Of a stretch of 64,000 bases of DNA, positions 2,850 to 63,851 are shown piece by piece. Within the stretch, counting starts at the first letter, position 1. Every line of letters starts with the position of its first letter. The stretch is from Octopus sinensis (lineage: Eukaryota). The stretch spans positions 182,528,001 through 182,592,000 of the forward strand of contig NC_042998.1 of the NCBI RefSeq assembly GCF_006345805.1. The letters are read 5' to 3'. Position numbers and translations under genes: made by a program. The notes under the pieces are model-generated. The model ran no database searches and was not told where the DNA came from. It saw nothing but the letters and a program-made list of their open reading frames with translations.

Positions 2850-2903
2850 CGTTTCAAATTCTGTCACCTCAATTCTGCTAGATTTAGGAGTTTGGACCAT
2901 TTC
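2850..2903 (-). CDS. Micro-exon 19, type A (EMVQTPKSSRIEVTEFET), identical to exon 17
   Basis: Same splice sites and 54-nt sequence as 8869-8922. Confidence 0.85.
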
Positions 2904-5875
2904 CTGTAAGATTAAATGAAATCAGAAACATTATTGTATTAAAATAATAAATTTTCAAAACAAATCATTTCTAATTTGTTAAAAGAACTCATGAATGTAT
3001 ACAGATATATATATATATAGATAGATAGATGATAAAGGTTAAAATACAAAAGCCATAATGGTAACAATGTTTAGTCTCAACATTACAATAAATACACTGC
3101 ACTTTTACTGTGAGCACATTTCCTCTTGTACGGAAACTAAAACTAACAAATACACATATGCACAGAGTACAACACAGACACTCCCATACACATATACTCA
3201 CACACACACCCACACACACACACTTTGCATAAGAATTTAAAATGGTCTTCATTCAGTAATTAATTCATCCACATATTTACAACATCATAATCTTATCTTC
3301 AAGATTATGTGTTGTTGGCACTACTTTTATAGTAAGAAGGGGTAATTCAATTTTGACTGTTAAATTTTGTCATCAATCAAAAGTTTACAACGCAAACAGT
3401 CACAATTCAAATTTTGGCAGTAACATTACTCTAAAGTGGTAGCAACACATTCCAGCATCTCTTCATTCTGAAGATGAGGCCATGAAGTTCTAGGAACGAA
3501 CTGAAAGGAAATTCTATGAAAATATGAAAAAGAACTTGATAAAAAAAATGTGCCACATAAAAAGCACTTGTGCTGGTGTCACGTAAAAAGCACACATGCT
3601 GCTGCCATGTAAGACCTACCATGATGGAGTCACATAAAAAGTACCTACACTGGTGTCTTGTAAAGAGCCCTCGCTACATTCTGTAAAGTGGTTGGCATTA
3701 GCAAGAACATCCAGCTATAGAAATCATGCTAAAATAAACAATTGAAGTCAGGTGCGGCTCTTCAGATTGCTAGCTCCTGTCAAACCATTCAACACATGCC
3801 AGCATGGAAAACGGATTTTAAATGACTTGTTTAGTTTATTTCTTCAGATTTTCTATAGAAATTATAGTCAGCCCTGATTTTGCTCCAACATTTCTTGAGA
3901 TCGAAGATGAAAACGGATAGTGGGAATACATGAAATATTTCAGGAATTTTTCGTCTTTCATCAGCACCCAGCCAACCTATAAATCATCCATGAACAAATT
4001 GATTAAACAGCTACTAAATACAGCAGTGTAACTTTACACAATATACCAATTATCAAAAAACATTTGTGAAGCTGGTGCATAAATATTAATGACGTATTAT
4101 TAATGTCAAAACAAAATTAGTGGTGGCTATAATTTCTATAGAAAATCTGTAGGGATAACTTTAACGAGTGATGTAATAGTTAACACAGCAGAACAGAGAC
4201 TTATAAAAACATTAGATATAATTTGTAGTATATCATGGTCACATAATGAAATACAGTGTCCCTACACATCATTAATATGAACATCATATATATGTATGTA
4301 TGTATTATATGTAAGTATATGTATGTGTGCATATATATATATATATAATATATATATATATATAATATATATAGACCGGAGCTTAAAATAAAGTATATAT
4401 ATATATATATATATATACATATATACATAGAGAGAGAGAAAGCGAGAGAGAGGTAGGCAGTCAGGATTTGCATAAGAAATTTTTATTTAGCTCTTTTGTC
4501 CTTTTGAGATTTTTATCAACACACTAAATAAATATTCGGTATCCAAATACTACCTCCATTTTTTTTAATATACATACATACATGCTTTTATGTGTACATA
4601 CATACATATGATATATATCATGTATATATATATATATATATATATATATACATACATACATGCATACATACATACATATATGTATATAGATATCTACCTC
4701 ATATGTGGGCAATTCTTTCTTTGGGTGTGCTTGTGGATCTGTTAGCTAACTCCTCATACATTGTTTTATCAATTTCAATGAAACTTGACACGTGAGGAGA
4801 ACTCATGTCTAGAAACCTCATGGCATACTCAAACTGTTGAAAAATTGACAGAAGGGCCCCTGGAAGGAATCCTTATATATAAACAAGGGAAATAACCCAT
4901 TCATTTACCTAAATTATTTGGTAAAAAGGAAATTGAGTATGCTTATTTCTTAGTATTTGAACTGTTAGAGTTATTTTAACAATTTATCCAGTACAGCCTT
5001 TAAACAAGTAAATAGTATTTTACTAAACAATAAATCAACTTATTTCGGTTAGTGACTTATTCACGAATATATCAACACCACCACCCCTGAGGGTAATATT
5101 CTCAAGGAATGCATGAAAGCCCTTTTCAGAGTTATTTACTTTAAATTGTTATCTCAAATTTGATTAGCCTGTTATTATGTAACATGCTTCACGATTATAG
5201 AATAATATACTTTATTAGTATTTCCTTCTATGTTCTATATACTCTGGGAATGCATTAAAGCCCTTTTTCAAGGCTACTTTATTTGAATTCTTACTATCCG
5301 ATAACTAATTTCATGTTATTGCATAACTTACTTCACAATTTGGGTATTCGTAATTTATTTAGAAGTCCTAAAATCAAGATGCTGTGTAAGAGAGTTCAGT
5401 ATTCTCTATAGATGCACAAAAACCGTTTTAAGGGATACATAATTTGTATCGCTGTTATTGGATTACATATAATACATCAAAAAGAAGTGAACTTGTTATG
5501 AAATCCACAGAATAAAACAAGAGTTCCTCTTTAGCGAATATGAAATATAATGTGTTTTCAATGTTATAATGATAAATCATTCCCTTGTAAAGATTCTGAT
5601 ATATTTTTGTACAAGAAATATGGTGGCCCTGTTAACATGTTGAATTTAGCAGTTTTATCTATCATGATAGACATATACATACATACACATACATACACAC
5701 ACACATACACACACACATACATACACACATACATACACACACATACATACATACATACATACATACATACATACATACATACATACATATATTATACTTA
5801 TACAAATATAGATGCATGTGTACTAAAGAAGATATTTGCTTCCTAAACCGAGGTCAACATGTCCAAAGTAATTAC

Positions 5876-5929
5876 CATTTCAAATTCTGTTGAGTCATGT
5901 TTGCTAGATCTAGGAAGTGGGCCCATTGG
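5876..5929 (-). CDS. Micro-exon 18, type B (PMGPLPRSSKHDSTEFEM)
   Basis: Acceptor tttatttaattttacAG, donor ATG|GTaatt, 54 nt, phase 0. Confidence 0.85.
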
Positions 5930-63102: not shown

Positions 63103-63144
63103 CCTGCCAGCACGTGCTCCCCTAGGACTTGCAGCAGATTTACT
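63103..63144 (-). CDS. Micro-exon 2 (SKSAASPRGARAGR)
   Basis: Acceptor ctttccttttgctttacAG, donor GTaatt, 42 nt, phase 0; upstream intron homologous to that of the 61.2-kb exon. Confidence 0.78.
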
Positions 63145-63806
63145 CTGTAAAGCAAAAGGAAAGCATATATATTTATGTTACTATTAAAAAGGTAAATATA
63201 TTTCTTGATTCTAAACAGCACAATTGTTCAGTGAAGACTCTATACAAAGTCAGACAGTTGCCTACTAGTCTTAGGCATCCTGTAAATCCATGTATGTATC
63301 AATGGCATAATTGGTACATATTGCAAAGTGCATCATTTTGTATAAAAAAGAGAATGGAAAGCTCAGCATATCACCACATGCATTTCAATAGCATGGTTAT
63401 TTATGACGAATGCAAAGTACATTAAATAACATTACATAATTCTGCATCGTCACATAACAATCCTGTTTCATCAGGTAACCTTCAGCAACCATTCTGTGAA
63501 ATACAATCAGTCTTTGGAGAAAAAGATCTTTATACTCATAGATTCGACTTTGTCTTACCCAGTATAGCCTAAGGAAATTTTGTGGTTATGCAACAATGCA
63601 AAATTATGCACATTGCACTGGTAGTAGATAATTGCACTATTAAGATGTCTGAGCTCTCCATTAAATATTCTTTACAACACACACACACACACATACACAC
63701 ACACAACACAAAACAGACACACACACACACACACATAATGATATTAATAGTTGAATAATTGCATTTCAATTCAGGACAAACAAATTTATATCTCTTAAAT
63801 AATTAC

Positions 63807-63851
63807 TTTGTCAGCATCCACGAGGTCATAATGGCTGATTTTCTCGGTAAA
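63807..63851 (-). CDS. Micro-exon 1 in window of unknown minus-strand gene (FTEKISHYDLVDADK)
   Basis: Acceptor tatatgctttcatttAG, donor GTaatt, 45 nt, open in phase 0. Confidence 0.72.

Follow-up and report, generated by a model that had tools for sequence, protein, structure and literature searches.

A 64,000-nt window of the Octopus sinensis genome (NC_042998.1, positions 182,528,001 to 182,592,000) features a run of 19 mini-exons on the minus strand. This run of ~61 kb is, with a probability of roughly 0.88, the middle (linker) part of the octopus orthologue of the C10orf67/DUF4709 proteins, LOC118762221. The LOC118762221 gene spans ~148 kb of a 208-Mb chromosome of GCA_006345805.1 and its product, XP_036356659.1, is a protein of 923 amino acids (aa) that is named "uncharacterized protein LOC118762221" [Octopus sinensis]. 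The protein would consist of helical, coiled-coil-like N- and C-terminal parts, which are conserved in molluscs, joined by a S/T/K/E/D-rich linker of ~440 aa. This linker would be composed of modules of 9–20 residues, each encoded by one phase-0 mini-exon (27–60 nt), with introns of 0.5–7 kb in between. The modules would have originated from repeated tandem duplication of an exon and its flanking intron, and the newest duplication layer would be the 3-kb/6-kb units at 1-12008. Since all exons are multiples of three nucleotides (3n) in length and in phase 0, duplication, loss, and skipping of modules never breaks the frame, and as a result module number and sequence are free to vary from species to species and from one annotated isoform to another.

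A mechanical splice-site scan re-found all 19 segments of the initial annotation on the minus strand with identical coordinates and lengths (Table 1), for a total of 969 nt or 323 aa, which reproduces the claim of 19 phase-0, 3n mini-exons. All of them are bounded by AG (acceptor) and GT (donor), and phase 0 is open in all 19, whereas frame 1 is open in nine and frame 2 in one. The statement that the type A exons (exons 15–19) contain stops in the other frames applies only to the copies at 2850 and 8869, as those at 13024, 11826, and 5876 have an open frame 1. The encoded peptide is of low complexity and S/T/K/E/D-rich with the recurring ends EFEM, GTDM, and DPEM, as had been described, and the frame is kept whichever exon is left out. 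A strict filter (an upstream pyrimidine content of 70% or more, a GTA[AT] donor, 42–57 nt, 3n length, and an open frame) returned 21 candidates on the minus strand vs 4 on the plus strand, compared with 3.7 ± 2.5 in local Markov simulations. The mini-exon pattern is beyond chance.

XP_036356659.1 was retrieved via a chimeric query of read-through open reading frames (ORFs), consisting of exon and adjacent intron. Using tblastn, residues 409–637 of this protein map in order onto the window exons. Twelve exons (2, 3, 4, 8–13, 15, 18, and 17 or 19) are 100% identical to the O. sinensis model and the matches begin and end at the predicted AG and GT. By low coordinate, the order in the model is 63103, 61211, 56345, 49398-49424, 36341, 32177, 29492, 26215, 23186, 17898, 13024, and 5876; next come a module that has no exact match in the window and, last, 8869 or 2850. 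The proposal of real coding mini-exons in one large minus-strand gene is borne out by these 12 segments. The description of the gene as hidden is not, because the NCBI pipeline had already annotated it as XP_036356659.1, with the predicted boundaries for 12 of the 19 exons. The gene is already in RefSeq and this is no gene discovery; what was found from raw sequence, by splice-site logic, is a real 61-kb run of mini-exons.

The alternative that the exons are noncoding, being either open AG..GT segments that arose by chance or members of a dispersed repeat family, draws on loose scanning criteria, which yield 76 such segments for the minus strand vs 50 for the plus strand, and on a genome rich in AT and repeats. 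The window itself is AT-rich eukaryotic DNA (30–39% GC) with microsatellites, copies resembling short interspersed nuclear elements (SINEs), and fragments of long interspersed nuclear elements (LINEs) throughout. The exact match of 12 exons to a RefSeq protein, the frame kept by orthologous exons in another species, the 21 vs 4 result of the strict scan, and the restriction of the family to a single strand and a single array leave this alternative practically no weight. It is refuted for 18 of the 19 exons and holds only for exon 1 and for an extra (20th) candidate at 16088-16141, which has neither the family flanks nor a model match and was rejected as a family member.

Identity of the host protein

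The initial annotation recognized no domain and could not name the gene, however, the whole protein features a DUF4709 domain and belongs with C10orf67-like proteins, both on the basis of regions outside the window. DUF4709 (Pfam PF15821) was detected at residues 24–106 of XP_036356659.1 and scores 31.1 bits in Argonauta. A phmmer search of a library of 1.8 billion representative proteins revealed 21 relatives of XP_036356659.1. C-terminal residues ~750–890 match gastropod "C10orf67, mitochondrial-like" proteins from Physella and Gigantopelta (XP_059175355.1 and XP_041366264.1; E 1.9e-6 and 2.4e-6), which have DUF4709 at 125–127 bits. The common C-terminal motif is EKKIxILQxSxxxLRNEMYxRQxLQRQ...H.A..Y. 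On sequence similarity, the window protein is placed in the uncharacterised C10orf67/DUF4709 family, where the link to C10orf67 comes from the NCBI names of the gastropod proteins and from the Pfam family. The gastropod C10orf67-like proteins share the N-terminal DUF4709 and the C-terminal motif with the octopus protein, however, they are 574–670 aa long and their middle is mostly coiled coil, or (DGVDKTLR)n in Gigantopelta, where the octopus protein has the array of mini-exon modules. Human C10orf67 has been reported as a candidate NOD2 interactor in a two-hybrid study (PMC5094585). A literature search on cephalopod micro-exon genes, LOC118762221, and C10orf67 function returned nothing relevant beyond this report.

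Single-sequence AlphaFold2 prediction features helices at residues 29–296 and 757–861 and a structureless centre at 297–756 with a predicted local distance difference test score (pLDDT) of ~30. The sole predicted helix in the array is a basic helix at 520–545, which is encoded by exons 11 and 12. The linker is probably disordered according to this model. Searches of the linker peptide against Pfam and PDB sequences, and of the whole protein against the PDB, returned nothing. Two long proteins with (APRKAQVSAFEFE)n repeats matched type A with E ~1e-5, and this was judged to be a chance low-complexity resemblance. The first 30 residues of XP_036356659.1 have a mean hydropathy of −0.65 and the best 19-residue stretch in the whole protein reaches 0.64, so hydropathy reveals no hydrophobic N-terminus and no transmembrane stretch. 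These values suggest that the protein is intracellular and not secreted. The module array extends past both ends of the window, to residues ~300–408 and 638–735.

Several points weigh against this identification. The spliced 323-aa peptide gave no match in a search of 5.8 billion proteins, although it shares more than 200 identical residues with XP_036356659.1; this false negative of the word-indexed search is unexplained, and a control search with a LINE ORF confirmed through an Argonauta hians match that the database contains octopod proteins. The DUF4709 score is borderline, at 27.8 bits vs a gathering cut-off of 27, and the O. bimaculoides score of 25.6 falls below the cut-off. The AlphaFold2 model was made with no alignment and has a mean pLDDT of 45, which makes "disordered" suggestive only. 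Additionally, the order of the type A modules differs, being R..E / EMVQ / P..D / EMVQ in the window and P..D / P..E / EMVQ in the model. The model may skip exons here.

Exon family, tandem duplication, and decay

Alignments of the exons with their flanks revealed intron sequence that is common to both sides of the exons. A motif like AATCATGAAATATATTT is located upstream, ~55–75 nt before the exon, and is followed by TTTYATTTTATTTTAYAG between this motif and the exon; downstream of the exon are GTAWWTATTTTAGATATATTGATTTGATTTC and the flank motif ATATATTGATTTGATTTC. Profiles built from the flanks only match no other sites than these 19 (E<0.01), which all lie on the minus strand, and because of this restriction the array is regarded as the product of tandem exon duplication and not as a dispersed repeat. 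Tandem exon duplication as the origin is supported by homologous flanks at 19 of 19 sites. Transposon-borne or dispersed pseudo-exons were rejected since the flank profiles match one strand only and all indels, between paralogues as well as between species, are 3n with the exception of the dead exon 1. A metagenome scan with the type A exon and donor flank returned 0 matches.

The four ~3-kb units are 95–97% identical by BLAST, with mismatches of 1.1–2.4% over ~2.9 kb per pair. The 3-kb periodicity reaches window position 1 and the tandem array extends past the left window edge. An older, partial type A unit with one 54-nt exon is located at 12.1–13.2 kb. This exon, exon 15, has flanks that are ~88–90% identical to those of the 3-kb units while the exon itself is 72–80% identical, and by this comparison it represents the oldest type A unit. 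Exons 17 and 19 are nucleotide-identical and either copy could serve the XP_036356659.1 model. Exon 16 is 94% identical over 17 aa to residues 603–619 of the model with no exact match, and differs by two residues from the model module PMGPLPRSSKHESTEFEM, whose exon would be located ~140 nt beyond the left window edge. In the type B trio (exons 6, 7, and 8), the upstream flanks are 86–89% identical and the exons are 71–72% identical. Exons 9 and 10 share the start ACAAGT and the end GG.AC.GATATG, so that exon 10 looks like a paralogue of exon 9. No exon 10 orthologue was found between exons 9 and 11 of the O. bimaculoides locus, and exon 10 may be a lineage-specific duplicate.

The orthologous O. 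bimaculoides loci, L001 and L002, are located on CM046602.1 at ~103.85–104.03 Mb, and L001 coordinates are positions in that locus. In O. bimaculoides, RefSeq divides the orthologue between two genes, with XP_052821827.1 for the N-terminal part and XP_052834497.1 and its isoforms for the C-terminal part, and the exon 4–7 region is in neither current model. The terminal VII of XP_052821827.1 is read-through into the gtaattatt intron after exon 3. The isoforms of the C-terminal half, which differ by one module, go by three unrelated and misleading names (SRRM1, HDGFRP2, and unc-89). Argonauta hians has two partial models and O. vulgaris only a 67-aa fragment. The exon map could repair the annotation in O. 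bimaculoides, Argonauta, and O. vulgaris. The mapped O. bimaculoides exons are 57, 33, 42, 48, 57, 60 (four exons), 54, 57, 51, and 33 nt long. All exons of the window and all mapped O. bimaculoides orthologues are 3n and in phase 0, and the indels between live exons of the two species are 3, 6, or 12 nt only. The O. bimaculoides type A modules are homogenised, with four nearly identical copies of QRSPTPTPKPSKDEPTEFET, whereas those of the window are diversified. The Argonauta hians linker (BAAFZT010000040.1) features 3n mini-exons of 36–54 nt with repeated tatcttttatag acceptors and unrelated module peptides.

Table 1. Mini-exons and tandem units of the window. Residues are those of XP_036356659.1 that are identical to the exon peptide; orthologues are those of O. 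bimaculoides.
Feature	Position	Strand	Length (nt)	Peptide	Residues	Remarks
Exon 1	63807..63851	-	45	FTEKISHYDLVDADK		absent from XP_036356659.1
Exon 2	63103..63144	-	42	SKSAASPRGARAGR	409-422	orthologue 48 nt (6-nt indel), flanks nearly identical
Exon 3	61211..61258	-	48	GTSSMTPKDDDKDTEK	423-438	orthologue 45 nt (3-nt indel)
Exon 4	56345..56395	-	51	GKYTSDVSYEDYSDFDS	439-455	
Exon 5	49383..49424	-	42	MRSSTSSEMVESEI		version of the initial annotation, donor GTATAT
Exon 6	47506..47562	-	57	IKSVPSFEASKISMKLYTT		type B; not in O. sinensis model
Exon 7	40398..40454	-	57	AKSTPAFETVTPDMKNSSS		type B; not in O. sinensis model
Exon 8	36341..36397	-	57	VQSVPVFESPTKEMKDAST	465-483	orthologue L001 346-402, 9/57 differences, all nonsynonymous
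Exon 9	32177..32233	-	57	TSCMPAFRVTKFVDEGTDM	484-502	orthologue L001 5525-5581
Exon 10	29492..29545	-	54	TSELSQKHPEMESKGTDM	503-520	
Exon 11	26215..26259	-	45	DDIVGKLKKETSKRM	521-535	orthologue L001 9971-10003, 33 nt (12-nt indel)
Exon 12	23186..23227	-	42	RKDSKRFKKDSLDI	536-549	orthologue L001 12971-13012
Exon 13	17898..17945	-	48	SKVYKIPKKQLSDPEM	550-565	orthologue L001 13513-13560, 10/48 differences, all nonsynonymous
Exon 14	15702..15755	-	54	RSKSSLDKSVKGDLSYTD		not in O. sinensis model; orthologue L001 14951-15007, 57 nt
Exon 15	13024..13077	-	54	ERGPSRISSKTEVSEFEM	566-583	
Exon 16	11826..11879	-	54	RMGPSPRSSKHESTEFEM		type A2; splice sites intact
Exon 17	8869..8922	-	54	EMVQTPKSSRIEVTEFET	620-637	type A1
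Exon 18	5876..5929	-	54	PMGPLPRSSKHDSTEFEM	584-601	type A2
Exon 19	2850..2903	-	54	EMVQTPKSSRIEVTEFET	620-637	type A1, second copy
Four tandem ~3-kb units	1-12008					two 6-kb A2-A1 pairs, one type A exon in each unit

Exon 1 had been listed as a live exon, however, it is not in the model. Its O. bimaculoides counterpart (L002 ~55281-55335) is 10 nt longer, a difference that is not 3n, and reads RKLVIMTKDNLVNADK from a TTTACAG acceptor. In the window (63807-63858), TTTACCG replaces this ancestral acceptor and 10 nt are deleted relative to O. bimaculoides, while homology to the exon family persists in the downstream flank. Exon 1 is most likely a decayed pseudo-exon, a putative relic of a 'KKSAxSSKDDxKDADK' module, and the phase-0 openness that results from an upstream TTTAG is fortuitous.

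Exon 14 features another loss. Its orthologue is included in the O. bimaculoides models and ends in ATG|gtaatt (donor 15008-15013 of L001), whereas the window has GTG|ataatt at 15696-15701, where G>A at the first intron nucleotide (+1) has removed the ancestral donor. Only a GTGATA donor 3 nt upstream is left, which fits the absence of exon 14 from the O. sinensis model.

There is a discrepancy regarding the boundary of exon 5. The acceptor is shared with the model, but the RefSeq exon is restricted to 49398-49424 (27 nt, MRSSTSSEM), with GTAGAG as its donor, and residues 456–464 of the model are followed directly by exon 8. The two donors, GTAGAG and GTATAT, are in frame and 15 nt apart. The donor of the 42-nt version aligns with the ancestral donor flank of the family.

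Exon usage and rates of change

The O. sinensis model leaves out exons 6 and 7, however, their 1:1 orthologues IKSVPSVETMKIEMKFSSS and IRSTPAFETFTMDAKSSST are included in the O. bimaculoides model XP_014790746.1. Exon 6 has an intact AG and GT and is bordered by sequence with 86–89% identity to the flanks of exons 7 and 8. These features make exons 6 and 7 candidate cassette exons. Exons with a 3n length and strongly conserved intron flanks are typical of regulated cassette exons. The omission of exons 6 and 7 and the dual donors of exon 5 fit regulated cassette exons at the level of annotation, and exons 6, 7, 14, 16, and 17 or 19 would in part be regulated in this manner, with the conserved intron flanks acting as putative splicing elements. 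They represent concrete candidates for regulated splicing in cephalopods. A point on the other side is that exon usage was inferred from NCBI pipeline gene models and not from reads. The expectation of combinatorially many isoforms is borne out to the extent that frame-neutral skipping is possible; the repertoire is only hinted at by the annotated isoforms, with O. bimaculoides isoforms X2 and X3 each being without one 20-aa (60-nt) type A module that is present in X1.

A different explanation of these model differences, which appears somewhat doubtful, is that the gene is real but all of its exons are constitutive, so that there is no combinatorial repertoire. Near-identical repeated exons confuse read mapping, and the differences between models would then be annotation artefacts. 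The paralogous modules appear serially in every model, the modules skipped in O. bimaculoides are near-identical copies that are hard to map, and the absence of exon 14 is explained by its lost donor and not by regulation. This explanation does not account for exons 6 and 7, which are open and have intact splice sites and yet are omitted in O. sinensis while the O. bimaculoides model includes their orthologues. It also leaves aside the combination of 3n exons with strongly conserved intron flanks and the two in-frame donors of exon 5. A Dscam-type cluster of mutually exclusive exons was rejected because the paralogous modules are serial in the models and there is no conserved flank pairing; RNAalifold predicts no conserved pairs for a docking/selector or exon-looping RNA structure between the flanks.

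The rates of change were determined by comparing the window with the orthologous O. bimaculoides exons using simple Nei-Gojobori counts. Six orthologous exons have a proportion of nonsynonymous differences (pN) of 0.213 and a proportion of synonymous differences (pS) of 0.053 (Fisher p 0.002), and eight orthologous exons have a pN of 0.215 and a pS of 0.095 (p 0.017). The pN/pS ratio is 2.3–4.0 across 6–8 exons, although it is weakened by the small sample of ~125 codons, the simple counts, and an ambiguous alignment of exon 11. Intron divergence is 0.075, which is exceeded by nonsynonymous divergence (p 6e-10) and is not different from synonymous divergence. Nonsynonymous divergence is ~2–4 times the synonymous value and ~3 times the intron value. 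The orthologous exons are 79–86% identical vs 92–98% in the 200 nt upstream. The entire intron between exons 13 and 14 is 92.5% identical between the window and O. bimaculoides, and the flanking 100–180 nt of intron is more constant than the remaining intron.

The same pattern is found within the window. In the 3-kb units, divergence peaks at one place only, the 54-nt exon, with 14.5 mismatches vs a mean of 1.1 per 54-nt segment. Type A exon cores differ by ~27% between alternate units vs ~1.7% for the surrounding ~2.9 kb, and the differing codons are nonsynonymous in 10 of 10 cases. A difference of 27% in the cores vs ~1.7% in the surroundings is too large for point substitution alone. The core divergence would be the result either of patch conversion or of intron homogenisation with selection that keeps the exons distinct.

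The divergence data suggest that diversifying selection, beyond relaxed constraint, drives the exon changes. The competing view, which is possible but on the improbable side, is that the fast exon change results from relaxed constraint on a disordered linker together with gene conversion and that it involves no positive selection. The pN/pS of ~1 (range 0.65–2) among the type B paralogues agrees with this view, as do the 27% exon difference in 3-kb units that are 98% identical, which suggests patch conversion or intron homogenisation, the homogenised type A modules of O. bimaculoides, and the small number of codons. Relaxed constraint predicts that pN, pS, and intron divergence are about equal, however, the observed pN is 0.215 with a pS of 0.053–0.095 and an intron value of 0.075. 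Additionally, the excess is present in the 1:1 orthologous exons 8, 9, 12, 13, and 14, which show no sign of conversion, and both the frame and the 3n indels are strictly kept.

A stronger reading, held only tentatively, is that the linker array is a region of selection-driven diversity within an intracellular, conserved coiled-coil protein. This reading agrees with three findings: the module peptides change 2–4 times faster than silent sites and introns, the intron flanks are more constant than the remaining intron, and the newly duplicated 3-kb units have 98% identical introns but exon cores that differ by 27%. What is worth keeping is the unusually fast and frame-preserving evolution of the linker, which is possibly adaptive. 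The locus provides a case study of the evolution of a disordered linker by exon duplication, with exons that change faster than introns and a frame-safe turnover of modules.

Known short-exon genes and other elements of the window

The micro-exon genes (MEGs) of Schistosoma feature very short symmetric exons, kb introns, frame-neutral skipping, an elevated ratio of nonsynonymous to synonymous substitution (dN/dS), and difficult annotation (PMC4350168, PMC10526429). MEG exons are 6–81 bp long, mostly 3n and mostly ~15 nt, and the proteins are smaller than 200 aa, each with a signal peptide (PMC4350168, PMC10526429). The octopus locus is similar in its short symmetric exons, kb introns, pN/pS of 2.3–4.0, and difficult annotation, and the MEG-like short-exon structure is seen for residues 409–637 and for the O. 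bimaculoides modules. It differs from MEGs in its 27–60-nt exons, a 923-aa protein, the absence of a signal peptide, and large conserved helical ends. The analogy with Schistosoma MEGs that had been drawn fails on the missing signal peptide and on the helical ends that flank the array. A Schistosoma-like MEG, that is, a secreted variable protein encoded mostly by micro-exons, would explain the small symmetric 3n exons, the long introns, the high dN/dS, and the possible exon skipping. It has only a very slim chance of being correct because a signal peptide or hydrophobic segment is absent, about half of the protein consists of mollusc-conserved helical N- and C-terminal parts, the protein is in the DUF4709/C10orf67-like family, and MEGs have been reported only in platyhelminths (PMC4350168). 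If both selection and regulated skipping are real, then the linker of the C10orf67-like octopus protein would follow a MEG-like logic that is undescribed in cephalopods or in non-secreted proteins, and sexual or other antagonistic selection could underlie the diversity.

In titin PEVK and nebulin, each in-frame exon corresponds to one disordered or repeat module, with recent duplication of exon-intron blocks and differential exon use. The octopus linker is similar, with one module per symmetric exon and recent tandem duplication of exon plus intron. In the titin and nebulin triplications, exons and introns are equally similar, whereas the octopus exons diverge far more than their introns. The titin PEVK analogy of the initial annotation is not sustained in composition or domains: P, E, V, and K account for ~33% of the residues in the 323-aa peptide, and the 923-aa protein has no Ig or Fn3 match. 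Casein and other SCPP proteins are secreted vertebrate proteins that feature small exons that are all in phase 0, S/E-rich modules, exon duplication, and skipping. The octopus gene shares the small phase-0 exons, the S/E-rich modules, and the exon duplication with these, however, its protein is without a signal peptide, and no sequence or domain link was found.

The introns contain LINE-type reverse-transcriptase/ORF fragments at 36724-37656 (+), 20950-21474 (-), and 33541-34023 (-). Among named proteins, the closest to them is one from Argonauta hians with 60% identity, and an exact look-up of the LINE ORF returned no record. A segment at 43171-43410 (-) is similar to the N-terminus (CxC...FKNRY.NHI..F), itself chimeric, of XP_014790746.1, an old O. 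bimaculoides model, and is presumably what is left of a GIY-YIG endonuclease from a Penelope-like element. SINE-like copies of ~250–330 nt (GTGCCACGTAAAAAGCACC...), which are 72–92% identical, are located at 16926-17250, 24041-24358, 27558-27875, 32851-33097, 39721-40042, and 56015-56265. A second repeat family of ~430 nt is present in both orientations at 13902-14321, 25576-26009, 29987-30430, 35217-35698, 41388-41862, and 55252-55687. Two pairs of inverted repeats, 45300-45603 / 46359-46658 (85% identical) and 49852-50298 / 50719-51162 (92% identical), may be foldback or terminal inverted repeat elements.

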